DNA from: Macrostomum lignano
Lineage: Eukaryota
Length of the DNA: 64,000 nucleotides
Direction: 5' to 3'
NCBI GenBank assembly: GCA_002269645.1
Contig: NIVC01002394.1
Location: forward strand, 114,523-178,522
Shown here: one piece after another, positions 10,001-49,819 of the stretch
How the letters are laid out: every line of letters begins with the position of its first letter
Position numbering within the stretch: the first letter of the stretch is position 1
Notes under the pieces: generated by a model
Databases searched by the model: none
What the model was told of the DNA's origin: nothing
The model's input: the letters and a program-made list of their open reading frames with translations, nothing else
Position numbers and translations under genes: made by a program

Positions 10001-12103
10001 CCATGCAGCGGTTGTACAGCAGGTTCGAGGCGCTTTTCTGCACTTGCACAGCTTCACCATTCTTGCGAATTCGGTTCGTCGCTACTTTCTGAGCTGAGCC
10101 GTGGGTGTCGATCATGAAGAATGTTTTCAAGCCGCTTTCCTTGCGCTCCAGGATTTTCATGGCCAGCACTGGCAGCTTCCTCATGAAAACTGCGTCATTC
10201 AACGGCACCTGCTGACTGCGCAATGCCAACGGCACTCCACGGTCGGCTCGAACAGTTGCTGTCAGCAGTGTGCTGCGTTCGTACAGAAAAGTCGCAAGCC
10301 GTACTGAGGCAAACCACTTGTCGACGAAAAGGTGATAGCCGAAACCGAGCAGGTCCTTGCAAAGGTGCACTACGATTTTCTCGCTTAGAGACAGCTGGTC
10401 ACAACCGAGGTCGTCGCCAAAATGAGAGTTCTCTTCAGCAGTCGAATGTACTAGAAAGTTATACAGGTAGCCAGATGCAGACTCACAGGCGCAGTACATT
10501 TTAATTCCAACTCTGGCTCTCTTCGATGGGATGTACTGCCTAAACTGAAGGCGCCCCTTGTACAGAATCAGGGACTCGTCGACGCTGACCTGCTGCTCCG
10601 GCTGGTACACGTTCGCGCAGAGCTGCTGAGCCAGACGGAGCAGCGGCCGAATCTTGTGCAGTGGGTCGTTCGAGGCGGGTGCTCGTGCATCGTAGAAACG
10701 AAGGAAGGCCAGCAGCTGCTTGAATCGGTCACGGGTCAAGCCATTGGGCGATTGAAAAAACGGAGTACTGTGAATGACACTGGTGCTCCAGTAATCATGC
10801 AGTTCCGGCTTCCGTGAGATGCCCATGAACAGGTACATACCCAACAGCTTGGATATCTCACTGCGGTTTGTGTCCTTCCATGACTTCAGCAAGCTCGAAA
10901 CATCTTCTCCATCATGTGTCGCCTGCTCATACTCAGCCCAAGCTTTTGCGTTTGTCCACTCCACGATCTTATCCAGCAGCTCATCGGTTAGAAACAGTCG
11001 TAGAAAATATTGGATGTCTTCACGGTCTTCGGGAAGGACAATGCTGGGGTTTACACCCGAAATTCCAGTGAAACTGGGGCCGTCTTCAACAATGTCTTCG
11101 CCTGGCTCCACAAACTGCCAATCGTCTTCTACTTCGCTGATAGTGACCGACTCAGACGACTCGGAGTTCTCCGCTATTCCAGCGTCACTTTCGGAGTCGG
11201 AAGTCAACAGAATATCCATATTTGGATTGATTTGAATTACATGAATAGAATTGTACAGAATTTGGCACAGCCCTTAATATACTAAAACTGGACTGTCTAT
11301 GGCCAGTCTTGTACAGTTTTGATAAGCGTGTGTGCAACCCATTCCAAATGTACATTCTCCTTCAACCCTAGATTAGACCAGCGATGGCTGGCTTATCGGC
11401 AGGAGTGGCAGTGCAATTCAGTTCACTGAAAGCTTGAAATAGTCTATGGTCAGCTCTGCTGACCATGCCGGCAGGAACGGAGCTTTCTATTTGGGAATTT
11501 GGGAATTGGGAATTTAGAATCTAGCGCATGACCGCGGGCCTGAGAGAGGAGAGGAGAGAGGAGAGCGAAGAGGAGGGCCGGGAGAGACTAGAGTGGATAG
11601 GAGAGGAGAGAGGAGAGCAGAGCAGAGAGGAGCGGAGGGACTAGAGTGGATAGGAGAGGAGAGAGGAGATCGGAGAGAAGGGGAGGGAGGAGAGTGAAGA
11701 GGAGAGAAAGGAGAAAAAAGAGTTGAGAAGAGTAACAATCATTTAGCAGTCCGCATCGCTATTGTGAAGTCAAGGGCCTTCAAAGTCAAAGTCAAAGTCA
11801 AGGAAAGAGAGGCTTCGCGGGTCGCATGCACTTATAATGTTTTAGTTCAAGAATAAAATAGTCTATGGTTACAACCCCTATTCCGACCCCAATCTGAATG
11901 TCGCACTGGTAGTGTGCGAACTCACGTCATAAATGTCTATGGTACAATGTACTGCAGTCATTGATTTTTATATGATGAACTTAAAGTTAGGACAATTAAT
12001 TTTCATAGAATAACTTACCGCACCTGGAGAACTTGAACGCGTTCGCACTACTTATAGTAAGTAGCAGGGCGGCGCACACGCAGAAACTAGGAAAGGCAGG
12101 CAT
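7007..12103 (-). CDS. GM2A: GM2 ganglioside activator-like / ML-domain lipid-binding protein with signal peptide, 4 exons
   Basis: Exons 12103-12019 (MPAFPSFCVCAALLLTISSANAFKFSRC G), 8845-8653 (..SLEPSVITLPGRITL..RIPCIFNIGSC), 7950-7737 (SYPDLCNLL..CPYQPAEL..LPGIPSLL) and 7102-7007 (GDYKIRVEL..SCFEMEMTLKKGD*). All junctions are GT-AG and phase-consistent. Motifs match the GM2AP pattern IPC..IGSC..C..CP..G.Y.I..L...C. Confidence 0.88.
7190..7500. repeat. 27-bp tandem repeat in GM2A intron 3
   Basis: Unit CACCTATAGCATATCTACCTAATCCAT, period 27. Confidence 0.93.
8045..8655 (-). repeat. 20-bp tandem repeat made of the intron-2 5' splice site, ~30 copies
   Basis: Minus-strand unit GTGAGTGACTAGAGC(TGCAG/AGCTG); the first copy is the real donor at 8652. 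Confidence 0.95.
9050..11483 (-). mobile_element. piggyBac-family DNA transposon in GM2A intron 1; one end found
   Basis: TTAA (9046-9049) followed by CCCTTAGATG at the low-coordinate end. Imperfect inverted repeat 9151-9192 versus 11444-11483. Transposase ORF inside. No GGG-TTAA end found on the high-coordinate side. Confidence 0.88.
9573..11219 (-). CDS. piggyBac transposase (PGBD4-like), 548 aa, uninterrupted
   Basis: Acidic N-terminus; VSVDESLILYKG, LFVDKWFAS and YNRCMGGVDRLD (DDD triad); C-terminal Cys-rich domain RCRVC..CCSAC..LC..CF..WH. Confidence 0.93.
   Translation of the reverse strand: MDILLTSDSESDAGIAENSESSESVTISEVEDDWQFVEPGEDIVEDGPSFTGISGVNPSIVLPEDREDIQYFLRLFLTDELLDKIVEWTNAKAWAEYEQATHDGEDVSSLLKSWKDTNRSEISKLLGMYLFMGISRKPELHDYWSTSVIHSTPFFQSPNGLTRDRFKQLLAFLRFYDARAPASNDPLHKIRPLLRLAQQLCANVYQPEQQVSVDESLILYKGRLQFRQYIPSKRARVGIKMYCACESASGYLYNFLVHSTAEENSHFGDDLGCDQLSLSEKIVVHLCKDLLGFGYHLFVDKWFASVRLATFLYERSTLLTATVRADRGVPLALRSQQVPLNDAVFMRKLPVLAMKILERKESGLKTFFMIDTHGSAQKVATNRIRKNGEAVQVQKSASNLLYNRCMGGVDRLDAMLKPYDSCRKTYKWFHKLGFHLCLLLVHNAWVVYSKHGGRLQLFKFLESCITLLVDSTGPGRQRTAARQPAAAAAQQHFPSKLPPRESCPRPVKRCRVCYRNGTAKRTVFCCSACPNAPGLCPSPCFERWHVNH
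11540..11730. repeat. Purine-rich (AG) low-complexity tract
   Basis: Direct reading. Confidence 0.8.
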
Positions 12104-14018: not shown

Positions 14019-16004
14019 CTACTTCTCAACAATCAGGGTGCTGTAGAAGGTGTCGTGGGTGATCCACTTTTCGAAGAAGTTAACGGTGACCCGGCAGCCG
14101 TAGACGCCAGCGTCGGATTCCTTGACGTCGTCGATGCCGACGGTGTAGTGGTTGGCGCTGCCGCGCATGATCTCGATGCGCTTGTCGTCGGTGCGAGCCA
14201 GGAAGTCGGCCAGGGTCTCAGCGTCGCGCATCGGCTCAACGAAGACGCCCAGGCCGGCCAGCTCGGCGTTGACGCGGCAGCCGAAGCTCGCCTTCTGGCC
14301 AGCCTTGACGGTGATGATCTCTCGGTGGTCGGCCGGCTCCAGCAGCGGGAGCACCTGGACATCGATGGAGCGCCAGTCGGACTTCTCCTGGCCGCGGATG
14401 CACTGGCAGAAGTAGGTGCCGCTGTGCTCCTCTGGCTTGGCGTCGCGCACCAGCATGGCGGAGAAGCGGGGCAGCACCGGGACCTCGACGACCGGCATGT
14501 CGGTCTTGTTGTTCAGATTCCACTCCACAGTCAGCTCCTCGTCCGGCCGGCGCTTGCCAGTGCACGGGCACTCCAGCAGGAAGTCGTCGCCGAAGCGGAT
14601 GATGCGGTTGCTGAGCGGGTTCATGGACAGCACGGCCGGGTAGCCCTCGACCACAGAGACTGGCTTGGCCTCCAGGTCGCAGCCCTGTTCCTTGATGCAG
14701 GGCTCCACGGTCAGGGCGATGGTCTTTTCGCGAGTCACGTGACCCATGCGACCGTTGTGCAGGCGGGCTCGGCAGAGAAACTCTTCGTTCTCCTTGGGTC
14801 CGGCAGAGTCGATGATGAGGTCGAAGGTGGCCTTGCTCATCTGGATGGCGCCGTGCAGCATCTGGTTGAGCTGCTCCAGAGGGATGAGCCTCGGGCGGGG
14901 CGGGCCCGCTCTGGGCTTCTCAACGATGTAGCACTCTGCGGCAGCGGCGTCCGGCTCGGTGGTGATGGCGTTGGACACGATGGCGCTCATGCCGGCCTTG
15001 ACGGTGACCTCGTCCTCCTTCTTGGCGAACTCGCCCATCTTGGTGACGAAGAACTGGGCCTCTCGGCTGATGACTGAGCCGAACTCGTTCTTGGCCAGGC
15101 AGACGACGGCCTTGGTCAGGTCCATGAACTGCGGGTTGACGATAACCAGCTGGCTGCGCTCCTCGATGCTGTCCGGCGGGCATGGGTGGTGGGCCTTGCA
15201 GTCGCGCTGCAGGTTGAAGAACGAGGTGCTGGTGGTGGAGTGATCCTTCAGCGGCTCGTGCGGGTTGGTGGTGATCTTGGCGTCGATCAGCTCAGTGATC
15301 AGAGACTCGTTAGCGACCTTCTTGACCAGACGCCACTCCACGGTTGGCTTGGGCATGCCGTAGGCCAAGCAGTTGAAGGTGACGATGAAGGGCCGGGCCT
15401 CTTTGTCGGCTTTCTTGGTTGTCTCCTCGGTGGCCGGCTTGATCAGGGCCTCAGTGATGAACAGGTGCTCGGGCTCAATCTGGAACTGAGGCCGCTGGGC
15501 AGCCGGATGGGCCGGGGCCTCGCAGATGAAGTTGCGTGGGATGTTGGTCTTGTTGGCCTCCAGCTCGATCTTGCTGTGGTCCTTGTTCGGGTTGATCACC
15601 ATCCAGAACTGCGGCTTGGGGGCCTCGTCCGGCTTCTCCTCTTTCTCGGTGCGCTGGTGCTTGCCGTGGCCCCTGGCCCTCGGCAGCGACCGGTGCATGA
15701 AGGTCGGGTCGAAGAACCACAGCGAGGTAGAGTCAGTATCGTGCTGGTTGCTCTTCACGATCAAGTCGTTGATGAAGTACACCTTGTCCATTCGGTGGGC
15801 GAAGCTCAGCAGTCTGGCCTTGTCGGCCTGGCAGGCCTTGTAAGCGTCGTCGAAGAGCATGGGCTCGGACATCAGCTTCAGGCAAGAGGCCTCGTAGTTG
15901 GTGTGGAACAGGGTCCAGCCATCCCGGCAGGTCATGACTAGCTGGCCGGAGTCGGCGCAAACGGAGGCTGCAAAAGCAGCCAGCACTAGCAGGCAGAGTC
16001 GCAT
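14019..16004 (-). CDS. Intronless secreted contactin-like protein: signal peptide, C-type-lectin-like domain, 4 Ig-like domains; 661 aa
   Basis: MRLCLLVLAAFAASVCA signal peptide; CTL pattern C..GW..C...A...C....A.L.S..FICE; Ig1 CLAYGMPKPTVEW..CLAKNEFGSVIS; later Ig domains with D.G.Y.C. Stop follows Ig4, with no FN3, TM or GPI tail. Strong GC3 bias. Confidence 0.85.
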   Translation of the reverse strand: MRLCLLVLAAFAASVCADSGQLVMTCRDGWTLFHTNYEASCLKLMSEPMLFDDAYKACQADKARLLSFAHRMDKVYFINDLIVKSNQHDTDSTSLWFFDPTFMHRSLPRARGHGKHQRTEKEEKPDEAPKPQFWMVINPNKDHSKIELEANKTNIPRNFICEAPAHPAAQRPQFQIEPEHLFITEALIKPATEETTKKADKEARPFIVTFNCLAYGMPKPTVEWRLVKKVANESLITELIDAKITTNPHEPLKDHSTTSTSFFNLQRDCKAHHPCPPDSIEERSQLVIVNPQFMDLTKAVVCLAKNEFGSVISREAQFFVTKMGEFAKKEDEVTVKAGMSAIVSNAITTEPDAAAAECYIVEKPRAGPPRPRLIPLEQLNQMLHGAIQMSKATFDLIIDSAGPKENEEFLCRARLHNGRMGHVTREKTIALTVEPCIKEQGCDLEAKPVSVVEGYPAVLSMNPLSNRIIRFGDDFLLECPCTGKRRPDEELTVEWNLNNKTDMPVVEVPVLPRFSAMLVRDAKPEEHSGTYFCQCIRGQEKSDWRSIDVQVLPLLEPADHREIITVKAGQKASFGCRVNAELAGLGVFVEPMRDAETLADFLARTDDKRIEIMRGSANHYTVGIDDVKESDAGVYGCRVTVNFFEKWITHDTFYSTLIVEK

Positions 16005-16114
16005 GGTTAATAACTGCTGCTTGGAATATCGATTAGAAATGCGAGACTGAACGGGTACGGTTGCAATTAACACAAGAAAATTATGTCTACGTTGAGAGTG
16101 GCTACAGGGCTCGT

Positions 16115-17994: not shown

Positions 17995-18852
17995 TAGAGA
18001 GCGGATCAGACTGAGGAGTAGAGAGCGGATCAGACTGAGGAGAGAGCGGATCAGTCTGAGGAGTAGAGAGCGGATCAGACTGAGGAGTAGAGAGCGGATC
18101 AGACTGAGGAGTAGACAGCGGATCAGACTGAGGAGAGAGCGGATCAGACTGAGGAGAGAGCGGATCAGACTGAGGAGTAGAGAGCGGATCAGACTGAGGA
18201 GAGAGCGGATCAGTCTGAGGAGTAGAGAGCGGATCAGACTGAGGAGTAGAGAGCGGATCAGACTGAGGAGAGAGCGGATCAGACTGAGGGGTAGAGAGCG
18301 GATCAGTCTGAGGAGTAGAGAGCGGATCAGTCTGAGGAGTAGAGAGCGGATCAGACTGAGGAGTAGAGAGCGGATCAGACTCAGGAGTAGAGAGCGGATC
18401 AGACTGAGGAGAGAGCGGATCAGACTGAGGAGTAGACCGCGGATCAGACTGAGGAGTAGACAGCGGATCAGACTGAGGAGTAGAGAACGGATCAGACTGA
18501 GGAGTAGAGAGCGGATCAGACTGAGGAGTAGACAGCGGATCAGACTGAGGAGTAGAGAGCGGATCAGACTGAGGAGTAGACAGCGGATCAGACTGAGGAG
18601 TAGACAGCGGATCAGACTGAGGAGTAGACCGCGGATCAGACTGAGGAGTAGACAGCGGATCAGACTGAGGAGTAGAGAACGGATCAGACTGAGGAGTAGA
18701 GAGCGGATCAGACTGAGGAGTAGACAGCGGATCAGACTGAGGAGTAGAGAGCGGATCAGACTGAGGAGTAGACAGCGGATCAGACTGAGGAGTAGACAGC
18801 GGATCAGACTGAGGAGTAGACAGCGGATCAGACTGAGGAGTAGAGAGCGGAT
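17995..18852. repeat. 24-bp (and 21-bp variant) tandem repeat
   Basis: Unit GAGCGGATCAGACTGAGGAGTAGA. Confidence 0.95.
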
Positions 18853-25749: not shown

Positions 25750-25890
25750 AAAATGGCAGAACAAAGACTAATGGGAGCAGCGATACCAGCTCGTAGCAGA
25801 ACAAAGACTAATGGATGCAGAGTGATGGCATAACAAAGACTAATGGGTGCAGAGTGATGGCATAACAAAGACTAATGGGTGCAGAGTGAT
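25750..25890. repeat. ~34-bp tandem repeat, ~4 copies
   Basis: AACAAAGACTAATGG recurs four times. Confidence 0.75.
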
Positions 25891-26898
25891 AGCTTAAAAA
25901 CAGGTTTTGGGCGAAAATGTTGTTGCAATATATAAGCAAGCTTTTTAAAATTGAAAATGATAAAAACAAAACCTCAGATTATGAAAGCAGCAATCTGAAC
26001 AGAAGCTTGATAGGAATAAAAACGATTAGGTCAATAGGGCAAGCAGGGTCAGCCGAGCCATCACAGGACATGTGTGATTAACTGCATAATACACTTTTTC
26101 ATTAGCAGGTTTATCAATGCATTATGCAGAGTAACCACACAGTCACGGGTGATGAATTTTTTAATACCTTTTAGCATATAATATTTTCTAAGCTTGCAGT
26201 GCAATGACTCAAATTTCGTGAACAACCTGCATAATAGATTATGTAAATAGTTTAGTTATTATCATGACAATCCAATTCTGCAAGTTGTTTTGCACGACAC
26301 TTGAGTCAGTTAACTTGTATATGGATTAACAAAATTTTAATAACTTACCTTAACATTTTTCTTTGTTACAATGTATCTAAAATGATTATGTATCCAGTTA
26401 AATACATAGAGATAGTAAAATAGCAGACATTTGGATGAAAAAACAATAATGTACATTGTTAGATAATGCCTAAGTTATTCCTTTAACTTTATGAACAAAA
26501 AACTGGCATAAATATCATTTATATTTATATCAAAAAATGCTAAAGCCTTTTTAATAGTAAATCTAGTCTATCTATTCAGCTTTTAAAAATTCATTTTGCA
26601 TTTTGCTTCAAGATATCAGACAAAAATGATAGAATTAACATATCCAAATTGAGTCAGATTGGTTTTAAATTTTTATCATATCATTTCTATTCTAGCAGAG
26701 ATCATTTAACATATTTATTTAAATGCTCATTAACAATTTTTAAATCCTATATATCAACTGAGATATAAGTATACATGTACAATTTAGGCAATATAGTATT
26801 GAAAGGTAATTAACTTCTTTATATTTAGAGGTCATTCAAGAATATCTTCATCTAGCATAAAGTCAAATTAAATAAAAAAACAAGATATGACTTAATTT

Positions 26899-27598
26899 TG
26901 TCGTAGGGCTCTGTCTCTCTATACAATTTCAACCGCTGACACCAAAGTGTGCTAGGGGTTATTCCTTCTTGTTAATATTGCTGGTTATTACTCGCCTTTT
27001 ACTCGTAGCGCATGTACTTCTATTGGTAGCATCTGTACTTCTATTGGTAGCGTATGTACTTTCTGGCCTGAGCAGTCTTTTAGGCACTGTCTATGTCTAT
27101 CCTATCCTTATACTCCTCTAAAGATATTATTCTCAGTCCTGGGCATTCCCAGGATCAGAGGGTCACAGCTTATTTGCTAGGTATTCTGCCCTGAGGCGGG
27201 GTTCTCAGACTCGGAGTCTGGGCTTCTCTACCCTGTGGTAGGATCTCTGCCTCCTAAAGGCGATTTCTCAGATCCTAGATCTGGTTGTCTCGTTCTCTGA
27301 GAACGGGTTGAACTCTCCCAATCTTGGGGCTTCTGATGCTTTCTAAAATAACTAAGTCAGTAAGTATCAAGCAATATACTAGAACAGTTTTAAGCTTGAA
27401 GCCAGCGAAGCACAAGTAGCACAAGTAGCCCAAGTTTCTCTCCTTCTTATTCGGCTTGTGTATTTATACTCTTCTCGATTTGGTCTTTTAAACAAATAAA
27501 ATTTCATAATATTTAAAATATTTACAATATTACTAATATTATACGTATTAAAACAAAATAACCTAGTTTCAAATATACTACTTTCTAGGAAACGAACA
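26899..27598. mobile_element. Possible solo LTR (TG...CA, 700 bp)
   Basis: GC-richer island in AT-rich DNA. Starts TGTCG, ends CGAACA. Two ATTGG boxes in a direct repeat (~27012-27060), TCAGT at 27133, AATAAA at 27495-27500. No target-site duplication (AATTT versus ATGCT). Confidence 0.35.
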
Positions 27599-30500
27599 AT
27601 GCTAAAATAAGGCCTACCTCAATATATATACTTAATAGTCAAAAGTTCCACTCCCTATATATTATGTATATAGCTACAGAGACAAGTTTCTTATTTAAAA
27701 TTCAACCTACAAGTATAAATTAAGCAACCATGCTGAAAACTAAGGATTATGCTCATCACAATAAATAACAATAGTTTTTTTAATACTAGCTATTTTTTAT
27801 TATGCCTCTAGTTTTAAGCAATCTAAAGTATGAAAAAAGTTGACTTACACTCATTTATAGAGAATGATTTTTATATGTAGAGATAACACTTGACCATAAG
27901 TTGAATATAAGTATATTTAGGTAATGCAACATTTCAACAAGTAGCCATGTAGCTTATAGAATTTATATAAAATTTTCATTATGCAGCTATGAGAATAAAT
28001 TCTATTGATGTATACAAACACTTTGCATAAATGTTATCACATATAATTTTACTTTCTTTTACTTAAAAAAGACTAATTTATTTTCTAGTTTAAAAAGATC
28101 AAGAAAATAGTCAAAAGTATTGATAATAATGACTAAATACAAGTCACAATTTAGTATAGAAATTATGACCAAAATTAAAATTGAATATTGCTAATTAAAA
28201 CCAAAACTTTGCTAAAAACTAATATATTAGATAAACCTAACAATCTGCATTAAATAAAGCATCTAAAACGCAATAAAGGCCTATATCATTTGAAACTTCA
28301 AGGCTTTAGCATAAGCTTATAACCATAAGCCCTAAAATTATTCCAAGAATTTCAAAATTAATTCACCATCCTATCAGTGATATATCCAAATATTTGGATT
28401 TGGAATCTAAATCAGATTTAAAATGTCTCTGTTTTTAGAAATACAAATGTTTTGGATTCAGAAATTTTATTTTCTGAATATTTCTGAATATGCTTTCAAA
28501 TATGAAAAAATGAAGAAACATAAACAAATTAAAATGTAAAAGAAAAAACTTTTGAAATAAGAAAGTACAAAAAATCAGAAAAATACATTTTATATTATAT
28601 TATTCATTTTTGCAGTAACATATTTTAAAGAAAGTTATAGAAAGTAAATTTACTTTTTGCAATTATTGTTAAGTGCAAACATTAATGGTTTTTTTTCAAA
28701 ATGTACATGCATGGACTTACAATAAAGTTCTTAAATTGCACAAATATAGTGTCAGTTATTATTAGTAATTAGAATTAGTTAGATTACTTATATAAGAATT
28801 AAGATCAATTCAAACTTATTTACTCTTTACTAAGTTTTAATTCTTGCAATTTCACTTGAAAAGTAGACTAGTTGTGCTCAGATCACTAATTAGATGACAA
28901 AGCATTTTCATTACTTAAAAGTGTCATAGTTACTCCCACCATTTATCTTTTACCTTTTACTTACATTTGGAAACATTTGGACATTTGGATTTGAAACTAT
29001 TTTGTAATTTGGATTTGGTTTTGGAAACTTGAAAAATCAATATTCAGTCCATAACTATATAATCAAGTTTATGCTCAAAAAAACCAAATGACAAATTACA
29101 TATATATTATAATATATATATAGACATTATCAAAAGTCATTGCAATAATGAAGGACCTTTTTTGCATTTTAACAATATAGGAATATAAGACCCTTTCTTG
29201 CATATAAAAACTAAGACTAAGACTAAATAAAATTTTAGTCTTTGTATATAATAGCTAGGCCTATGCCAACAGCTATGCTATATATTAGCTCTATAGCATA
29301 ATTTTCTAGTAGGCTTTTTGTCTACCAGATACTTTATACCAATAATTCTTTTCAGATCCATTGTAGGGTATGGTCAAAATCATCATATTCTAAATTGTCA
29401 TATATGATGATGACAACTTAGCCAATCTATAAGATTTTACCATTTGAATATGACAAATTCATCAAATTTCTTGGAATTAAAACTAAATTAAACAAAATAA
29501 CATGTTCTGCCTTAGAATAAATTAAAGCACATTTTTATAACAGCTAAGGAATAATATCTTAAATAAAGTTTAAAAATATGATTGCTTCTAAATCTAATTA
29601 TAAAGTTATCAAACTGTTACAAGGCAATATTTCTATCATTTATTCCTAGTTAAACCCAAAGAATATCAAGCTAATATTAGCTTAGTGTTCTTTAGTTAAA
29701 CCTTGAAATTTAGCTAGACTATTAACTTTAATATAGGAATTAGTCCAAGGCTTTGCATCTTTTAAGCAGATAATAACAATATAAGTTTAAGTTGAGAATC
29801 ATTTTGTTGGCAAGCAATAACATGTTACTATTAATGAGAGCAGATCTTTGTGCAGCCAATGAAATATAATATGATGATTTAGTGAATCCAGCATTGTCTA
29901 AATGCAGAGATGATGACAAATTTGATAATTTAGATTTATTTGTTTTTTTCATAACCCACATTTGAGTCTATGATAATCTCAAATATGATAATTTCGGCTG
30001 GAGCCCCATTGTATGGCTATATGCTAGAATTTTCTGGCATATATATATAAGATTTGGGAGTGGGGAAGTAGTAGATAGTTGTTACACATAAGAAAGTTCC
30101 CTCTTGCATAAAAAATAAGCACCAGAAAAAATGAGGGCAATATTTTCATTCATTGAGTTCAATTATTTTGACATGAAAAAATAGTATAATACAAAGTCAT
30201 TTGTCATTAGAGTGTCAATAGTAGTGCCAAACTCAATATAGGAAGTTCCTAAACACTTTTGGCGATGGGAAGAGGTGGCGCCATAGATACTCATTGAGGT
30301 GGGTATCAAACCGGGCGAAATAGTTTACTAATTTAAGCATTCCCGCCATTAGGCCCTAGTCAAAGTTTAATAGTTTAAACATTAGTCAACAACATCACAC
30401 GAATGATTCCCAAGGACGACTAGCTTCCATGAGGTAGGTAGGTAAGTAAGTGGCTCAGGCAAGAAGCCTGTTTGACCAATATATTTCAATGTCTTTAATA

Positions 30501-31369
30501 ATACTTCAAGAGTAGAAGGAAATATGTATGCATAGAGAGGTACGAGTTTTCTCCTAAATTAACTTTTTTAAATTTTGTAAAGGAAGGAATACAAAAAAAT
30601 CGAACTGTTGTGTAAAAAGTTCGAAATAACTGTAACTGTTCGTATTTCATTAGTATTTTTTAGCGTGGCATATTTTAAGCAACAATGAATAAACCTAGAC
30701 GTTCATCTTTGTTTTAACACACTGTAAGTGTAAATTAAAATTTCGAGGCGTGCGTCCATTACATCGTTTTTCAATTTTCGCATGTCGGCGAAAGATTACG
30801 TGGCATGTCTGCTTTTTCGAAACAAAATTTGGTGCAGCAACGATTATGACGCTTTAAGTTCTTAAAACAATTAAACAATTAACAATTAAAACAATTATAC
30901 ATACAAAAAATGATATTTCATTACAACTCTTTGTATAACTTATTCACATTGTATTATTAAAAGAACTAACTTCAAAAGTTTTGTAGCTACTTTTTACTTT
31001 TTCTTTTAAATATTTCTAGTTGTTTTGTCTATTAGTAGACAATATGTGGCAGAAAAAATGATTGCATACCAAACAAATCTTTTTCAAATTGATTTGAGTT
31101 TTGGTTAAAGTTAAAGGATCAACATTCTTTACCTATAGGCCTAACAAACCTTTGCCTAGATAAATAGATTTTTCATTAGAGCTAAGGCCTAATTAGAATC
31201 AGTGTTACATATTAGACCATTAATAGATGTTAATGAGAATTAAAGATTTTTCATTAACTTTAATAGACTGACATTTAGATTTTTTGCATTAATGCCAATA
31301 GATTAACAAACTTATGTTAGGCCCTATACTTTGGAAAGCATATATCATATTGAAAAATTCTAGCATGCA

Positions 31370-31520
31370 TTTAGTTTCGCTTGCTATCTGTGGGATGCTT
31401 GCTATCTGTGGGATGCTTGCTATCTGTGGGATGCTTGCTATCTGTGGGATGCTTGCTATCTGCAGTTAGTTACTCTTGGAAGGGGGGTGCTTGCTATCTG
31501 GGGGATGTTTTCTATTTAGG
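31370..31520. repeat. 18-bp tandem repeat (TGCTTGCTATCTGTGGGA)
   Basis: Direct reading. Confidence 0.85.
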
Positions 31521-33314: not shown

Positions 33315-36140
33315 CTGTTTTAAAGCTTTGAGCTATGCAGATTTAGCCTTGGAGACAAATTTCGCTGAATTGACTTGAATTACTGCGAGATTTATTGTAT
33401 ACTGCTAAAAGTAGCATAAATGGCACACATCAGCTTCTGAGCAGCCAATTAGGTCTGAAATTCTTAATCCATCAGGACCTGGTCCTGAAGACTCCATGAG
33501 GTGTAATTTCATCAGGACCTGAAGACTCCATGAGATGTGAGTCCATCAGGGCCTGAAGACTCCATGAGATGTGAGTCCACCAGAGCCTGAAGACTCCATG
33601 AGATGTGAGTCCATCAAGGCCTGAAGACTCCATGGGGCTTGAAGCCATCAGAGCCTGAAGACTCCATGAGATGTGAGTCCATCAAGGCCTGAAGACTCCA
33701 TGGGGCTTGAATCCATCAGAGCCTGAAGACTCCATGAGATGTGAGTCCATCAAGGCCTGAAGACTCCATGGGGCTTGAAGCCATCAGAGCCTGAAGACTC
33801 CATGAGGTGTGAGTCCCTCAGGGCCTGAAGACTCCATGGGGCTTGAAGCCATCAGAGCCTGAAGACTCCATGAGGTGTGAGTCCCTCAGGGCCTGAAGAC
33901 TCCATAAGGTCTCACCCCATCAGTGCCTGAAGAGTCTAATCAAATTAGGAATTAAATTAAGAATATACCTGCGTCATACTTTCCCAAGCAACCAAAACTG
34001 GTTTTTAAAGGTGTTAAACACACGCGTCTATTGTTTGAATTGAATGGTATCTTTGCACAGTCTCAAAGGTGGCATTTTGGTGCTTGGATAATTAATTACC
34101 TTATAAGTCAGATAAGTTAATGAAAACGTCGCAGTGACTAGACAGCATGTGTGACCCTATTTTTTATTTAAGGGGACACAACGTGGGCTACAATTATTTA
34201 CAATATGTCAGCTTAAAGTGCTTTGAGGTAATTATATTTTCCAAATTTGCGGAAATTAATCTCGGGTATGACATTCCTAAAATTTTACTGCCAATAATTT
34301 AATCAAATACTTTTCATTTATGATCATAAAATGGTGGGGGCGTTGTAAAAATGAAACAGAATTCCACGTAAATTATTATTACATGTAACAGCATTTACCT
34401 CAGCCAAACAATGAACGAGTGTAGTGAGTAGCGATAAAAGTTTTCTCACTTTGAGTTCGACTTGTTCTCACCTATTAGAATGCACTTTTATGTCGTGCAT
34501 TCTAATAGCCACACATGCACTCTAATTAATCGATGAAGCTTTTCCAAGGATGCTGCATTTGTGCGAGCGAGCATGCGAATTTTAATCACCGGATGGAGCA
34601 ATGTCAAAAAGGATGGTTTATGAGTCTGTGGATGAAAAAACCTTATCAACAGTGATCAATGCTTGATTGCAACTGTCTAACATCTAATCTGGGTTGTAGA
34701 TCAACTGTCTTACATCTAATCTGGGTTTTAGATCAACTGTTTAAACTGTTTTAAAGCTTTGAGCTATGCAGATTTAGCCTTGGAGACAAATTTCGCTGAA
34801 TTGACTTGAATTACTGCGAGATTTATTGTATACTGCTAAAAGTAGCATAAATGGCACACATCAGCTTCTGAGCAGCCAATTAGGTCTGAAATTCTTAATC
34901 CATCAGGACCTGGTCCTGAAGACTCCATGAGGTGTAAATTCATCAGGACCTGAAGACTCCATGAGATGTGAGTCCATCAGGGCCTGAAGACTCCATGAGA
35001 TGTGAGTCCACCAGAGCCTGAAGACTCCATGAGATGTGAGTCCATCAAGGCCTGAAGACTCCATGGGGCTTGAAGCCATCAGAGCCTGAAGACTCCATGA
35101 GATGTGAGTCCATCAAGGCCTGAAGACTCCATGGGGCTTGAATCCATCAGAGCCTGAAGACTCCATGAGATGTGAGTCCATCAAGGCCTGAAGACTCCAT
35201 GGGGCTTGAAGCCATCAGAGCCTGAAGACTCCATGAGGTGTGAGTCCCTCAGGGCCTGAAGACTCCATGGGGCTTGAAGCCATCAGAGCCTGAAGACTCC
35301 ATGAGGTGTGAGTCCCTCAGGGCCTGAAGACTCCATAAGGTCTCACCCCATCAGTGCCTGAAGAGTCTAATCAAATTAGGAATTAAATTAAGAATATACC
35401 TGCGTCATACTTTCCCAAGCAACCAAAACTGGTTTTTAAAGGTGTTAAACACACGCGTCTATTGTTTGAATTGAATGGTATCTTTGCACAGTCTCAAAGG
35501 TGGCATTTTGGTGCTTGGATAATTAATTACCTTATAAGTCAGATAAGTTAATGAAAACGTCGCAGTGACTAGACAGCATGTGTGACCCTATTTTTTATTT
35601 AAGGGGACACAACGTGGGCTACAATTATTTACAATATGTCAGCTTAAAGTGCTTTGAGGTAATTATATTTTCCAAATTTGCGGAAATTAATCTCGGGTAT
35701 GACATTCCTAAAATTTTACTGCCAATAATTTAATCAAATACTTTTCATTTATGATCATAAAATGGTGGGGGCGTTGTAAAAATGAAACAGAATTCCACGT
35801 AAATTATTATTACATGTAACAGCATTTACCTCAGCCAAACAATGAACGAGTGTAGTGAGTAGCGATAAAAGTTTTCTCACTTTGAGTTCGACTTGTTCTC
35901 ACCTATTAGAATGCACTTTTATGTCGTGCATTCTAATAGCCACACATGCACTCTAATTAATCGATGAAGCTTTTCCAAGGATGCTGCATTTGTGCGAGCG
36001 AGCATGCGAATTTTAATCACCGGATGGAGCAATGTCAAAAAGGATGGTTTATGAGTCTGTGGATGAAAAAACCTTATCAACAGTGATCAATGCTTGATTG
36101 CAACTGTCTAACATCTAATCTGGGTTGTAGATCAACTGTC
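33315..36140 (+). repeat. Direct tandem duplication, period 1431 bp; each copy contains a ~34-bp minisatellite
   Basis: 33315 onward matches 34746 onward at a constant offset of 1431. One substitution noticed (GTAATTTC versus GTAAATTC). Confidence 0.95.
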
Positions 36141-37960
36141 TAACATCTAATCTGGGTTGTAGATCAACTGTCTTACATCTAATCTGGGTTTTAGATCAAC
36201 TGTCTAACATAACATCTAATCTGGGTTGTAGATCAACTGTCTGACATCTAATATGGGTTGTAGATCAACTGTCTAACATCTAATCTGGGTTTTAGATCAA
36301 CTGTCTAACATAACATCTAATCTGGGTTGTAGATCAACTGTCTAACATCTAATCTGGGTTGTAGATCAAGTGTCTGACATCTAATCTGGGTTTTAGATCA
36401 ACTGACTAACATCTAATCTGGGTTTTAGATCAACTGTCTAACATAACATCTAATCTGGGTTGTAGATCAACTGTCAGGCGTCTAAACTGGGTTGTAGATC
36501 AACTGTCTAACATAACATCTAATCTGGGTTGTAGATCAACTGTCTGACATCTTAACTGGGTTGTAGATCAACTGTCTGACATCTAAACTGGGTTTTAGAT
36601 CAAGTGTCTGACATCTAATCTAGGTTTTAGATCAACTGTCTGACATCTAATCTGGGTTGTAGATCAACTGTCTGACATCTAAACTGGGTTGTAGATAAAC
36701 TGTCTGACATCTAAACTGGGTTGTAGATCAACTGTCTGACATCTAAACTGGGTTGTAGATCAACTGTCTGACATCTAAACTGGGTTGTAGATCAACTGTC
36801 AGGCGTCTAAACTGGGTTGTAGATCAACTGTCTAACATCTAATCTGGGTTTTAGATCAACTGTCTAACATCTAATCTGGGTTGTAGATCAAGTGTCTGAC
36901 ATCTAATCTGGGTTTTAGATCAACTGACTAACATCTAATCTGGGTTTTAGATCAACTGTCTAACATAACATCTAAACTGGGTTGTAGATCAACTGTCTAA
37001 CATAACATCTAATCTGGGTTGTAGATCAACTGTCTTACATCTAATCTGGGTTTTAGATCAACTGTCTAACATAACATCTAATCTGGGTTGTAGATCAACT
37101 GTCTGACATCTAATCTGGGTTGTAGATCAACTGTCTAACATCTAATCTGGGTTTTAGATCAACTGTCTAACATAACATCTAATCTGGGTTGTAGATCAAC
37201 TGTCTAACATCTAATCTGGGTTGTAGATCAAGTGTCTGACATCTAATCTGGGTTTTAGATCAACTGACTAACATCTAATCTGGGTTTTAGATCAACTGTC
37301 TAACATAACATCTAATCTGGGTTGTAGATCAACTGTCAGGCGTCTAAACTGGGTTGTAGATCAACTGTCTAACATAACATCTAATCTGGGTTGTAGATCA
37401 ACTGTCTGACATCTTAACTGGGTTGTAGATCAACTGTCTGACATCTAAACTGGGTTTTAGATCAAGTGTCTGACATCTAATCTGGGTTTTAGATCAACTG
37501 TCTGACATCTAATCTGGGTTGTAGATCAACTGTCTGACATCTAAACTGGGTTGTAGATAAACTGTCTGACATCTAAACTGGGTTGTAGATCAACTGTCTG
37601 ACATCTAAACTGGGTTGTAGATCAACTGTCTGACATCTAAACTGGGTTGTAGATCAACTGTCAGGCGTCTAAACTGGGTTGTAGATCAACTGTCTAACAT
37701 CTAATCTGGGTTTTAGATCAACTGTCTAACATCTAATCTGGGTTGTAGATCAAGTGTCTGACATCTAATCTGGGTTTTAGATCAACTGACTAACATCTAA
37801 TCTGGGTTTTAGATCAACTGTCTAACATAACATCTAAACTGGGTTGTAGATCAACTGTCTAACATAACATCTAATCTGGGTTGTAGATCAACTGTCTGAC
37901 ATCTAAACTGGGTTGTAGATCAACTGTCTGACATCTAAACTGGGTTGTAGATCAACTGTC
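36100..37960. repeat. 32-bp satellite, ~1.85 kb, with a ~861-bp higher-order duplication
   Basis: Unit CAACTGTCTAACATCTAATCTGGGTTGTAGAT. The variant GTCAGGCGTC occurs near 36474/37336 and 36799/37659. Confidence 0.95.
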
Positions 37961-38059
37961 AGACCGAATAGTCGAGAGCAATACTTTTTAAGTCTTTCAG
38001 AGCTGACATGCAGTCAGCGGGGCGGTGCATCACCATTATCGGCAGCGCTGTGCCGCAGG

Positions 38060-40124
38060 TCAGCAGCGGCATGCGCAGGTCTGCAAGACGCTGACGCTCT
38101 GCTTCACCCAGCGGCACTGGGAACGGCGCCAGCGCTTCGGGCACAGGTAGCGCAGCACCTGCAGCTGCCGGTGCCTCTCGGGCCTGCAGCGCATCCCCGG
38201 TGGAACGGAGCAGCTGCCGCCGTACTCGGAGCCGGCGCATTCGCCAGCGCGAAGCCAGCGCGGCCAGAATGCTTTGCCGAGGTCGCGCCACCACAGCCGC
38301 ACGGGGCAGGCCGAGTACGCCCACAGGAATTTGCGCAGCTGGCGTTTCTGCTGGCGTTGAAGGAAGCGAAGCCGGAGGTGCCGGCCGTAGGGCAGGCGGA
38401 CGGATCGGCGAGGCAGCAGCTGGCCGAGGCGGGGCAGCCGGCCGGGCATGCGCGGGTAGTCCAGCTCTTCGGTGTCCTCGGGCGCGTCAACACGCATGTA
38501 GCTGGGCTGGTAGTTGTAGAAGCCTGGATTGGAGGATCGCGGTGCGTGGACTGCTGTTGAGTTCTGTCATGGACAACTTACGATTGGATGTCCGGAACTC
38601 TTTTTATTTCCAGAGCGAAAACAACTTTGGCGTCAACCAATGTACTTGTAAAAGCGATGGTTTGTCTTTATAACAGGCTTGTACAAAACGTTATGTGAAA
38701 CGATAAACAGTAAAAACACAAAACTTCACACACTTACTCGTATTCTTCAGGAGGAGTCCAGGTCTTCCTTCCCATTTCAAATGGCTATTGTCTATTGTCT
38801 CATAAAAGGGGCATGTCAGGATCTTTAAAATCCATAAGATCCAGAGTAGCTACTTTAGAAGGTTAACTAAAAAGCAGCTAAAATTCTTTGCTACACTACT
38901 CACAAAAGACAAACCCGTATAGTAGTGCTAAACGAATGCTGCTGTATAAAAATTGGGTGGCACTGGAGAAAATGTCTATGGCATGAAACAGGTTTTGAAG
39001 CGAATGCCAAAGTTAAAAGCAGCGCAAGCAACCTGCAGAGGGTTGAAGATATCACAGGCAGAAGTTCGTGGCCAGCTGTTTTCTTTCGAACAAAAAGTAA
39101 ATGGTGGGACATTTTTCAACAAAAAGCGACTCGCGGAAAGCCCCGATTGCACCTGACTGACTTTGCGCAGCCAGTCGGAGTCTCAGCACCGCACTGCACC
39201 ACTGTTGCTGAGGGGGCGGTGCTCCTGTTTTGAAAGCGACCCTGCGTCAACAGGCCAGGAGGCGATGCTATTAGTGGCCCACCAGAAGCATTCCAGCAGC
39301 GCAACTGGCGCGCATGTGAACTGTTCATGAGAGCCGTGCTTCATTTTTTCTCCCGCTAGGTCCACGCCGCATTTGCGGCCCTCGAGTGCCACCCTCGGGC
39401 TTGAACGCTTTTCTTTGAAAGGGTCACCTATTGGCAGTTTAAACCTCACTTCTTGCTCAGTCACCTAACACAGCATCACTGATCAGGCACTGACACAGCA
39501 TCACTGATTAGGGATCAGGCACCTGACACAGCACCACTGATGAGGCACCTGACACAGCATCACTGATCAGACACCTGACACAGCATCACTGATCAGGCAC
39601 TGACACAGCATCACCGATTAGGGATCAGGCACCTGACACAGCATCACTGATCAGAGGATTAAGCACTGACACAGAATCACTGATCAGGCACCTGACACAG
39701 CATCACTGATCAGACACCTAACACAGCATCACTGATCAGGCACTGACACAGCATCACTGATTAGGGATCAGGCACCTGACACAGCATCACTGATCAGGCA
39801 CTCACCCAGCATCTCAAGCATCTGGCCTGGCCGCAGCAGCACTTCAGCGCGGTCAAACTCTTGCTCGTCAACAAGCGACGGCGAGGGCGGAGGCGGCCGC
39901 AGCACCCCGGACTCCCTCAGCGGATCGTAGCGAGTCGCCTGGTTGCTCCGCAGGCGGTGCCACATGGTTTCAGCCAGGCTGCGACTGTCGTTGACTGCCG
40001 GGCTGATCGCTGAGCCATCGCTGACCGCGGAAGGCGAACCAGCGGCCGCGGCAGCTTCGGCCACAAATGCTACTAGTAGCAGCAGCAGAAACGGCGACAA
40101 AGCTCGGGGCACAAACTGGGCCAT
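38060..40124 (-). CDS. NOG: Noggin (BMP antagonist), 2 exons, 260 aa
   Basis: Exon 40124-39806 has a signal peptide and LRPPPPSPSL clip-like region. Exon 38523-38060 gives LG|FYNYQPSYM..FLWAYSACPV.WWRDLG..FWPRWLRAGEC..CSVPPGMRCRP..LRYLC..C.WV..VLQTCACRC*. Nine cysteines; phase-1 junction is consistent. Confidence 0.93.
39466..39803. repeat. ~26-bp tandem repeat starting at the noggin donor site
   Basis: Plus-strand unit CTGACACAGCATCACTGATCAGGCAC. Confidence 0.9.
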
Positions 40125-44200: not shown

Positions 44201-47200
44201 TCAGTGACAGCCAAGCAAAGTGTCTGGATCAGCAGCAGCAGCAGCAGGCGCCAACGGAGGGGCTCTCCAACGCCGGAAGCAGAGCCAGAGCGCCAGCTCG
44301 CACAGCCCAGTGATCAGAGGGATGGCACCAGCCAGGCCCAGTACAACTGAGCGGCCGCTGGGACCGACTCTGGCAGACTGGCCGGGGGCAGTTCCGCTGC
44401 CAATGTAGGGCGCCAGAAGGTGCACAGTGAGCATAGATTGCAGATTGAATGCCTTGGAGGCCAGGATGAGGTACAGGGAGGCGATCAGCGCGCTCATCGG
44501 CCGGTCGCGGCTCCAGCGACGTCGGTCGCGATCGGCCACTTCAACAACGGCCAGGGACTGCGAGGTGGGTTTACCGCAGTGGCGAGTTTACAGACTGCCT
44601 GTCTCCGCTTTAGTTCACAGCTAGTTCCGCCTTGGTTTACAGCTAGTTCCGCTTTCCTTGGTTTACAGCTAGTTCCGCTTTAGTTTACAGCTAGTTCCGC
44701 CTTGGTTTACAGCTAGTTCCGCTTTAGTTTACAGCTAGTTCCGCTTTGGTTTACAGCTAGTTCCGCTTTCCTTGGTTTACAGCTAGTTCCGCTTTAGTTT
44801 ACAGCTAGTTCCGCCTTGGTTTACAGCTAGTTCCGCTTTAGTTTACAGCTAGCTTCGCTTTAGTTTACAGCCAGTTCCGCCTTGGTTTACAGCTAGCTTC
44901 ACTTTGGTTTACAGCTACCTCCGATTTAGTTTACAGCTAGCCCCGTTTTAGTTTACAGCCAGCTCCGCTTTAGTTTACAGCTAGTTCCGCCTTGGTTTAC
45001 AGCTAGTTCCGCCTTGGTTTACAGCTAGTTCCGCTTTAGTTTACAGCTAGTTCCGCTTTAGTTTACAGCTAGCTTCACTTTAGTTTACAGCTAGTTCCGA
45101 TTTAGTTTACAGCTAGTTCCGCTTTAGTTTACAGCTAGCTCCGCCCTGGTTTGCAGCTAGTTCCGATTCAGTTTACAGCTAGCTTCACTTTAGTTTACAG
45201 CTAGTTCCGATTTAGTTTTCAGCTAGCTCCGCTATAGTTTACAGACAGCTCCGCTATAGTTTACAGCCAGCTCCGCTATAGTTTACAGCCAGCTCCGCTT
45301 TAGTTTACAGCTAGCTTCACTTTGGTTTACAGCTACCTCCGCTTTAGTTTACAGCTAGCTCCGCTTTAGTTTACAGCTAGCTTCACTTTAGTTTACAGCT
45401 AGCTCCGCTTTAGTTTACAGCCAGCTCCGCTTTAGTTTACAGCTAGCTTCACTTTGGTTTACAGCTAGTTCCGCTTCAGTTTACAGCCAGTTCCGCTTCA
45501 GTTTACAGCCAGTTCCGCTTCAGTTTACAGCCAGCTGCATCTGCCATGGTAAACAGTCTCACCTGCAAGTTGCAATTCAGTCCAACAATAGCGCCATCCA
45601 ATAACAGATAGGCCAGCTGCTGCCATAGGGCCAGTTCTGGCCCGGCCAGGTAGAACAGGCCGCCAGTAGTAACGGTGAGGCCCGCTGCCAGCAGAGCGGC
45701 ATCGGCTAGGGGCGCCCTGGCCAGGCAAGTATAGCAGAACATGAATAGCAGCGCTGGCAACAGCTGTGAGGCCAAATAGAACAGCGACTTGGCGCCGGCG
45801 CCCATAGCGGCGCCAGGGCCGGGCGGATCGAGCTGGTCGACCAGCATAGGCAGGAAGGCGGCGCCGAACCCCATGTGAAAATTGTGAGCGAATTTCAGCG
45901 CCAGCACGCATAGAAACAGGCGATCTGTGAATAACCGGCGAAGATTCTGCAACAGGCCCGGCTCGGCCAGGCGGATGGGTTGGCCCAGGCCGCTGGCTGC
46001 AGAACATGCGCCTCCGGGCTGCCAGACAGAGGGGTTGATGAGGGTGGGCTGCGGCTAGGATTCTGCGCGCGTGGGTGCTTGACACGCGATGGTGATGACG
46101 ATGATGATGGTGGTGATGGTGATGATGGTGGAGGGTGATGATGATGACGGTGGTGATTCAGTCAGTCAGTCAAGGCCAGTCAACTGCCTGTGAGTTCATG
46201 CGCAACGCCAACACCAACGGCCATGTTTATAATTGGGCAGAAATGTACACAGTTATATTTTTACTAGAATTAATTTCAATTACTACTATTTAGTCAGTAA
46301 TAAGTGAGAGAAAATGTGACAGGCTACTAAAGTTGATCAATGTTTCACACAATATTCAATATAGCTGATCACACAGGCCCCCCTATAAAACAGAGATTTA
46401 AATATTGAATAAATGTATGATAATTAATTCGGCAATTTAAAATTGTGCAGCACAAACTCGAGTCTCAGGTTAAAGCAACAGATTGAAGCAGACAGAGAAG
46501 GAAGCGGTCGGAGAAGCTCCAGATTAGGAAAGGAAATTGACACGAACGGAAATATGTTAATCCAGGAAATCCGGGAGAGGACGAAGTACGCCTGCGCTAC
46601 CTTAAGGAAGGGCCCGAAGAAGTTAGAGAAGCTGTCCGGGAAAGAATCCGATATCTATACGAACACCGAGCGTGGCACTGGGAAGCCAGTGAGAAGGTAG
46701 GCCTTATCATACCACTCTTTAAGAAAGGGGACAGGACCGACCTTAACAATTACCGAGGAGTGTGCCTCCTGCCGATGCTAAGTCGCATATTGGCAAGAAT
46801 CATCGCCCTAAGGTTACGGGACTGGGCAGAACGAGTCGGGGCGCTTGACGACAATCAGAATGGCTTTAGAGCCAACCGATCAACGGCAGACAGCACCCAG
46901 ATAATCATCCGTATACAAGAGGACATAACAGAATACCGCCAGGCGAAAAACGCCGTAGGAGACTGCAACCTAGAAGAAGACCAACTAGCATTTCTCCTAG
47001 ACCTCCGGAAAGCATACCCCAGAGTCAGCAAGCCGATACTTTGGGGGATACTACAGAAGTACGCCCTGCCGGAAAAAGTGATTGACAAATTGAAGGACCT
47101 TCATGAATACACAGAGTATAAAGTGAAAGGAAAGAAACAGTCCAGTGAATCGTGGTTGCCAGAAAGAGGACTACGCGAAGGATGCCCGACATCCCCAGTT

Positions 47201-49778: not shown

Positions 49779-49819
49779 CTGATGGGATAGGGAGTCGGGA
49801 CTGGGTCAGGGGGGTTCTT

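Follow-up and report, generated by a model that had tools for sequence, protein, structure and literature searches.

The window analysed here, that is the whole stretch of 64,000 nucleotides, is metazoan nuclear DNA and contains a piggyBac-type transposase, an immunoglobulin-domain ORF, Noggin, a reverse transcriptase with C2H2 fingers, a WW-domain protein and a LENG8/SAC3-like protein (Table 1). The best protein matches of the LENG8-like ORF reach 50-61% identity and come from flatworms, cnidarians, vertebrates and others, and the WW-domain ORF has a single weak protein match. TRF reported 43 non-overlapping tandem arrays with periods of 16-68 nt, which together occupy 16.7 of the 64 kb (26% of the window), and several of these minisatellites have a period of 21. 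More than 10 kb away from the recognisable genes, a non-coding island of ordinary GC content stands in a 5-kb AT-rich block (19-33% GC). No ORF longer than 52 amino acids was found in the island, stops occur in all six of its frames, and its plus strand has an excess of T, with 35 occurrences of TCT versus 7 of AGA. When both strands of the island were scanned, GTAAGTAT was the only strong 5' splice-donor-like site, and its position near the hairpin array described below would favour transcription, a point that we take as a lead only.

The array consists of seven perfect Watson-Crick palindromes between positions 27185 and 27329, with arms of 3-7 bp and centres of 1-5 nt, preceded by a separate hairpin (hairpin 1). 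All eight hairpins that an earlier note on this DNA had described are present in the sequence. Their starts follow one another at 51, 18, 22, 21, 20, 22 and 26 nt, so that the measured spacings bear out the range of 18-26 nt given in the note for hairpins 2-8. The last hairpin exists but had been bounded one base off, as CCCCAA/TTGGGG with arms of 6 bp; the correct form is CCCAA-TC-TTGGG with arms of 5 bp. With hairpin 8 rebounded to 27317-27328, a G follows the core in all seven units, and therefore the observation that hairpins 2-7 are followed by G was right for these six but its restriction to them was not. The centres of units 2-8, with unit 8 bounded in this way, are spaced by 20.5-24.5 nt. 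Hairpin 1 lies 47 nt, about two periods, before unit 2; folded as RNA, it would gain three pairs beyond an internal loop and reach -14.4 kcal/mol. This hairpin has TCAG directly before it and TCT three bases further upstream, and the TTCTCAG that opens units 3 and 6 also stands three bases before this hairpin.

Table 1. Features of the window discussed in the text, with positions counted from its first nucleotide.
Feature	Position	Strand	Description
piggyBac-type transposase	9573-11219	minus	
Immunoglobulin-domain ORF	14019-16073	minus	
Island	26899-27494		Non-coding, about 600 bp, about 45% GC
Three 21-nt direct repeats	26996-27061	plus	75-83% identical, each with a 3-bp proto-hairpin
Possible degenerate relative of unit 2	27061-27072	plus	11 of 12 bases as in 27184-27195, weaker palindrome
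Hairpin 1	27131-27160	plus	7-bp arms 27137-27143 and 27148-27154, 4-nt loop
63-nt higher-order repeat	27184-27312	plus	Two copies, 27184-27246 and 27247-27312
Unit 2	27185-27198	plus	TCT, GCC-CTGA-GGC (27188-27197, 3 bp, centre 4 nt), G
Unit 3	27203-27221	plus	TCT, CAGACTC-G-GAGTCTG (27206-27220, 7 bp, centre 1 nt), G
Unit 4	27225-27242	plus	TCT, CTACC-CTGT-GGTAG (27228-27241, 5 bp, centre 4 nt), G
Unit 5	27246-27262	plus	TCT, GCCT-CCTAA-AGGC (27249-27261, 4 bp, centre 5 nt), G
Unit 6	27266-27284	plus	TCT, CAGATC-CTA-GATCTG (27269-27283, 6 bp, centre 3 nt), G
Unit 7	27288-27306	plus	TCT, CGTTCTC-T-GAGAACG (27291-27305, 7 bp, centre 1 nt), G
Unit 8	27314-27329	plus	TCT, CCCAA-TC-TTGGG (27317-27328, 5 bp, centre 2 nt), G
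Donor-like site GTAAGTAT	27360-27367	plus	30 nt 3' of the array
Three 9-nt direct repeats	27409-27435	plus	3' side of the island
Noggin	38060-38497	minus	
Reverse transcriptase with C2H2 fingers	46760-48622	plus	
WW-domain protein	52718-54196	minus	
LENG8/SAC3-like protein	57746-59068	minus	

The palindromic cores, of 10-15 nt (13-15 nt in units 3-7), sit within a fixed frame made of a G, two or three free bases (six before unit 8), one semi-conserved base and TCT, and four linkers in succession are exactly 7 nt long. TCT stands directly 5' of the core in 7/7 units, as the earlier note had stated for hairpins 2-8, and G directly 3' of it in 7/7. The base before TCT is T in four units, C in two and G in one, while the middle of the linker is free. 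Over the 4 nt before the cores the units are 83% identical to each other, and conservation of the frame is 83-100%, whereas their left arms are only 30% identical, which is the random level. Pairing is nevertheless kept, with a mean of 5.3 bp between the arms of one unit versus 0.8 bp between arms taken from different units, and in this respect the description of different stems with conserved pairing holds.

When the units were aligned by anchoring on the frame, the number of units paired at each position, from the outermost inwards, was 7, 7, 7, 6, 5, 3 and 2, and the five outer pair positions showed 2-4 pair types each, a variation seen among paralogous units of one 150-nt stretch, which are the source of all the covariation evidence. 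All in-stem pairs are Watson-Crick (37/37), with no wobble and no internal mismatch, and T opposite G is found only at the seven frame positions. The palindromes of units 3 and 7 leave a single base at their centre, a spacing too tight for the innermost bases of a hairpin to pair. Once such sterically impossible inner pairs are opened, the loops appear partly conserved, with a C-T start in 5/7. Comparison of units 3 and 6 shows two adjacent pairs that differ, each on both arms, and unit 5 has one additional pair on each side relative to unit 2.

The array is also periodic in direct orientation. Sequence identity peaks at lags of 21-22 (0.37), 42 (0.38) and 63-64 (0.40), over a background of about 0.25. 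The alignment of the two 63-nt halves is significant (P=0.001), which makes unit 2 homologous to unit 5 and unit 3 to unit 6. Direct matches inside the array include an 8-mer at lag 63 and a 6-mer at lag 61; exact direct matches of at least 6 nt are not commoner than in shuffles (11 vs 9.9). The head-to-tail periodicity of a minisatellite is therefore present, but the likeness of units over most of their length is not: TRF reported nothing at 27184-27335, even at a score of 30, and the units resemble each other in the frame only. The best explanation is that the array is a short, old and degenerate tandem repeat in which seven units of some 21 bp form higher-order copies of 63 bp, with putative weaker relatives a little upstream, and that it belongs to the same broad class as the numerous 15-45-bp arrays of this animal genome.

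Some sequence upstream in the island resembles parts of the array. The three direct repeats at 26996-27061 share 10/11 bases of an 11-mer with unit 4, where it spans the right arm and the linker (pairwise P 0.0075), and the pairwise P for the likeness of 27061-27072 to unit 2 is 0.0015; assessed over the whole region, the upstream similarity to the array is not significant (P 0.085). It is possible that these two stretches are before-and-after relatives of units 4 and 2, respectively. Inverted copies occur between units as well. In unit 7, the 9 nt at 27296-27304 match 27201-27209 exactly in reverse complement, and the left arm of this unit repeats letters of the linker. In unit 6, positions 27270-27277 are the reverse complement of 27239-27246, the end of unit 4 plus linker (8 nt). 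Long-range inverted matches number 7 vs 4.5 expected, an excess that is not significant (P=0.17).

The excess of hairpins over chance depends strongly on the null model. Local dinucleotide shuffles gave a mean of 0.59 hairpins of at least 5 bp versus the 5 observed in 153 nt (0/5000 shuffles). Window-wide shuffles in 200-nt blocks contained a 125-nt stretch with five or more such hairpins in 18% of trials and one with 30 or more stem bp in 3%, and a phased chain weighted by stem length matched the observed value in 5.5% of shuffled windows; unweighted phased chains of five are ordinary in shuffles. The local test thus overstates the hairpin excess, and density alone is marginal window-wide, with P about 0.03-0.18. 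This marginal density is what would be expected from a chance cluster of short palindromes in low-complexity sequence rich in T, C and G, as are the hairpin total of the window (311 vs 300 +/- 15 expected) and the two unphased clusters of similar hairpin density at 28290-28507 and 53073-53243. Such a cluster is nonetheless very improbable as an account of the array. Perfect hairpins with 4 bp or more and a loop of 1-5, directly preceded by TCT and directly followed by G, form a motif that we defined after the data had been seen; the plus strand of the 64 kb contains it ten times, and six of these ten sites are consecutive within 123 nt (27206-27328). The invariant TCT before the cores and G after them, 7/7 in each case, and the identity peaks at lags 21, 42 and 63 also speak against chance. 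Among phased chains with different stems the array scores 14 and the runner-up 9. The pattern is real and unusual and is present in one copy in the window.

Folding against shuffled controls, which the earlier note had proposed as a check, showed that the array folds modestly better than shuffles but not in a strand-specific manner, with z values of -2.2 for the plus strand as RNA, -2.9 for the minus strand as RNA and -3.3 with DNA parameters (0/200 shuffles as good). Single units folded as plus-strand RNA gave -5.2 to -9.1 kcal/mol (z -1.5 to -3.5).

Several known identities were considered and rejected. A coding repeat, for which 21 nt would be 7 codons, is incompatible with the array, across which all six frames are stopped. 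Hairpins are not a general property of the minisatellites of this window either: among the 43 arrays, the unit of one alone was above shuffles in hairpin formation (P<=0.05). A known RNA family or ribozyme is ruled out by Rfam 15, which had no match at gathering score in the window and, in the search that the earlier note had suggested, none even at E<=10 over 26800-27600. The search for tRNA and tmRNA genes found none. The proposal of a small-RNA precursor fails on stem length, as the longest perfect arms are of 7 bp (8 pairs with wobble) versus the duplex of about 21 nt needed for a miRNA or hairpin-RNA precursor. LTR, MITE or foldback ends found no support in the window, which has no partner repeat, terminal inverted repeat or pair of matching flanks for the island. 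PiggyBac-type ends were considered at the TTAA present on both sides of the island, and the sequences inside them are not mutual inverted copies. The end of a Helitron carries a hairpin, and the terminal tetranucleotide of the family comes a short and constant distance after it; by reading, no such tetranucleotide is present in the 7-11-nt linkers after the hairpins. Scanning of metagenome contigs with 20-mers retrieved one chance match with unrelated flanks, and the scans of viral and prokaryotic genomes retrieved no other copy of the array.

The earlier note had placed the array at an initiator-like TCAGT inside an LTR-like island, and the corresponding explanation makes the island either a solo LTR or the terminal part of a retroelement not described before, with the hairpins as its R/U5 leader or packaging signal. 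The island has indeed some of this appearance, as a block of about 600 bp with distinct composition, with short tandem repeats upstream of a hairpin-rich stretch and with TG at 26899-26900 and CA at 27493-27494. We consider this origin quite improbable, because a second copy of the island is missing from the 64-kb window, a long direct or inverted partner is missing from 25800-31500, the 4-6 bases outside the TG...CA bounds differ (AATTT vs AATAA) and thus form no target-site duplication, and no primer-binding-like sequence follows the island. Downstream, a search of the six frames of 27481-31320 (3.8 kb), with stops written as X in the translations, found no retroelement Pfam family at E<=1, and no ORF is longer than 73 amino acids. 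The only reverse-transcriptase ORF of the window is 19 kb off. TCAGT occurs 197 times in the window, and the initiator-like pentamer is therefore without weight. With a single copy, no partner repeat, unmatched flanks and no retroelement domain downstream, the description of the island as LTR-like was not upheld.

We tentatively favour, on the evidence of the sequence, that the palindromes were created and extended at the DNA level by short-range template switching. In such a process, also known as quasi-palindrome correction, a polymerase engaged in replication or repair would for a moment take the other arm, or sequence close by, as its template and write its reverse complement, and in this way palindromes would be created, lengthened and kept perfect. 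One switch event would alter both arms at once, and the outcome would resemble covariation without any selection on an RNA. In published reports (PMC8794818; PMC13100816, PMC7954356), template switching makes perfect stems in one event and fixes existing pairing, homogenises and expands the arms of inverted repeats, and is documented in RNA genes, promoters and great-ape genomes.

Directly visible in the array are its periodicity, a frame that is conserved, arms that are unrelated between units yet pair perfectly, differences on both arms of homologous units and inverted copies of neighbouring sequence; for these we infer that a template-switch mechanism, together with absence of function, is the most likely explanation. 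Palindromes that run down to a single central base are predicted by copying and not by hairpin stability. The 37/37 Watson-Crick pairs fit a DNA-level process at least as well as selection on RNA. The multi-base differences on both arms, the inverted copies of neighbours, the possible unexpanded relatives upstream and a genome prone to repeats, whose minisatellites are enriched in the TCAG/CTGA letters of the array, would fit such a process too. We also counted on the side of a DNA-level origin that there is no ORF, no Rfam match, no tRNA and no strand preference in folding, and on the opposite side the conserved frame and partly conserved loops standing beside arms of random identity. Uniform neutral decay combined with copying from one arm to the other raises the rate of change in the arms no more than twofold, and therefore does not produce this two-class pattern, which needs either a constraint on the frame or repeated overwriting of the cores from neighbours. 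As regards overwriting, the array contains two independent inverted matches between units only. That all palindromes end at a T opposite a G is a regularity that template switching leaves unexplained.

The other group of explanations invokes selection on the hairpins themselves. A structure-selected RNA module transcribed from the plus strand would consist of seven or eight short hairpins, each with a U-G closing pair, separated by pyrimidine-rich linkers of about 7 nt. Such a module would be a scaffold on which a protein binds in several copies, or would mark a leader, and it might belong to a non-coding first exon that starts near 27135 and reaches as far as the donor-like site at 27360. This explanation is unlikely, though well worth weighing: positions that are either conserved or saturated, combined with perfect pairing, form the classical signature of constraint, and the loops are partly conserved, with their C-T start in five of seven. 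The T opposite G closes all seven stems, on the plus strand only, and at the base of a stem it is naturally meaningful only in RNA; if the T-G and the C-G beyond it are included, units 2, 3 and 7 have stems of 6-8 bp as RNA. The strand asymmetry of the island in TCT and AGA, the sole strong donor-like site on the same strand as the array and a GC content above that of the AT-rich surroundings, as in many exons, point in the same direction. Conversely, the lack of in-stem wobble (0/37) is unusual for saturated arms under selection at the RNA level, two units have a palindrome centre of 1 nt, the plus strand does not fold better than the minus strand, and no Rfam family was matched. Moreover, the covariation comes from paralogous units alone at a single locus, and the nearest recognisable genes are more than 10 kb off.

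Alternatively, selection could act on the palindromes as DNA, in the form of cruciforms or hairpins, or of sites for a dimeric protein that recur at intervals of two helical turns, and the locus could be an origin, a recombination site or the site of an enzyme of single-stranded DNA that would read a short fixed sequence beside whatever hairpin. The exclusively Watson-Crick symmetry, the phasing at 21 bp, which corresponds to two helical turns, and the strongest folding z value, obtained with DNA parameters, would agree with this. Some enzymes of single-stranded DNA recognise a fixed sequence beside variable hairpins, and the fixed frame of the array next to variable hairpins resembles their sites. 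Functional DNA palindromes are improbable, however, because seven different ones cannot serve one sequence-specific dimer and arms of 3-7 bp lack the length that a stable cruciform in duplex DNA requires. There is no candidate enzyme gene nearby, the sole transposase of the window is of the piggyBac type, lies 16 kb off and does not use hairpins like these, and here too the evidence comes from a single locus. More generally, it is rather unlikely that the array is a novel structure-selected module, which would be defined by free stems, a fixed three-base frame on the 5' side, U-G closure and a pyrimidine-rich linker of about 7 nt. A module of this sort could be a multivalent landing pad, of plus-strand RNA or of single-stranded DNA, on which a protein would read the shape plus the frame.

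If the palindromes are products of template switching, the array is a natural example of mutation imitating RNA covariation without selection, and a caution where compensatory changes are taken as proof of function. If, on the contrary, frame and pairing are selected, this animal genome would contain a modular hairpin array of a new type, built by a simple, testable rule in which the frame is fixed and the stem is free.

Among known systems, hairpins made by template switching have in common with the array perfect Watson-Crick arms, multi-base changes on two arms, extension of the arms and inverted copies of adjacent sequence. The cases described in the reports cited above are single hairpins in RNA genes, promoters and scattered loci, whereas here seven are phased in a fixed frame. 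The leader hairpins of LTRs compare with the array in the strong first hairpin after an initiator-like pentamer and in the tandem repeats upstream, but none of the defining LTR features was found at the array.

The A-repeat of Xist has about eight short hairpin-forming cores, pyrimidine-rich linkers and units whose length is in the 20s of nt. The architecture of this and other lncRNA modules is similar to that of the array, but the core sequence is conserved in them and unrelated between the units described here. In bacterial REP/BIME elements, integron attC sites and the 3' hairpins of Helitrons, which are DNA palindromes read as single-strand hairpins, pairing is kept while sequence varies, next to a short fixed flank. 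The likeness to these systems is one of analogy only, as the array belongs to an animal genome, has much shorter units and no cassettes, and its window contains no gene for a matching enzyme.

The array is most like a minisatellite whose units became independent quasi-palindromes. It has in common with minisatellites the head-to-tail units of about 21 bp, the 63-bp higher order and the letters TCAG/CTGA. The other arrays of the window have units 74-100% identical by TRF, in agreement with the earlier statement that all other repeats of the window conserve sequence, and form hairpins at the level of chance, whereas this array keeps its frame only and every core is a different perfect palindrome. 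The TCAG/CTGA letters, which in the array are found in loops and at the starts of units, occur in 14/43 unrelated minisatellite units versus 6.2 expected.

Two further clusters of hairpins in the window were compared with the hairpin array, the run of seven palindromes that recur about every 21 nt, each with TCT directly 5' and G directly 3' of its core. One of them, at 53073-53243, comprises 7 perfect non-overlapping hairpins of 5-7 bp within 181 nt, where local shuffles gave 1.0 (0/3000 shuffles reached the observed number), and sits in the GC-rich coding sequence of the WW-domain ORF; these hairpins are unphased and share no frame. The other, at 28290-28507 in AT-rich DNA 1 kb 3' of the hairpin array, contains, within 228 nt, 7 hairpins with stems of 5-6 bp (2.4 expected, P=0.001), which are irregularly spaced and have no common frame. 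A 20-mer from unit 3 of the hairpin array had its sole public match in a metagenome contig (L001, 5640-5659) with unrelated flanks, and a single such match is about what chance would give in a collection of that size.

Minisatellite density is extreme throughout the window (1-64000), and the arrays are unrelated to each other. TRF detected 43 arrays that do not overlap, their periods ranging from 16 to 68 nt; together they occupy 16.7 kb, or 26% of the window, and within an array the units are mostly 74-100% identical. TCAG/CTGA tetramers occur in 14/43 of these unrelated array units (6.2 expected, P=0.004) and CAGAC/GTCTG in 5 (1.7 expected), an excess which hints at a common origin of the arrays or a common array-forming process. 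These minisatellite-enriched letters appear again in the hairpin array.

Minisatellites, duplicated array and long ORFs in the window
Feature	Position	Strand	Details
Minisatellite stretches (examples)	398-1077; 17995-18852; 36101-37964; 49802-51746		
34/68-nt array plus flank, two copies	33484-33964; 34915-35395		Offset 1431 nt; identical TRF statistics
piggyBac-type transposase ORF	9573-11219	-	548 aa, uninterrupted; DDE_Tnp_1_7 (E 1.8e-70) and C-terminal zinc finger
Reverse-transcriptase ORF	46760-48622	+	620 aa; reverse-transcriptase domain, then C2H2-type zinc fingers
Ig-domain protein ORF	14019-16073	-	Long, no introns
Noggin ORF	38060-38497	-	Long, no introns
WW-domain (WAC-like) protein ORF	52718-54196	-	Long, no introns
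LENG8/SAC3-like protein ORF	57746-59068	-	Long, no introns

The closest database proteins to the long intron-free ORFs reach 50-61% identity at best, so close relatives of the source animal are absent from the protein collection compared. Exact look-up of the piggyBac-type transposase returned no identical recorded protein. The paired copies of the 34/68-nt array reflect a duplication that is both recent and local and spans about 1.4 kb.
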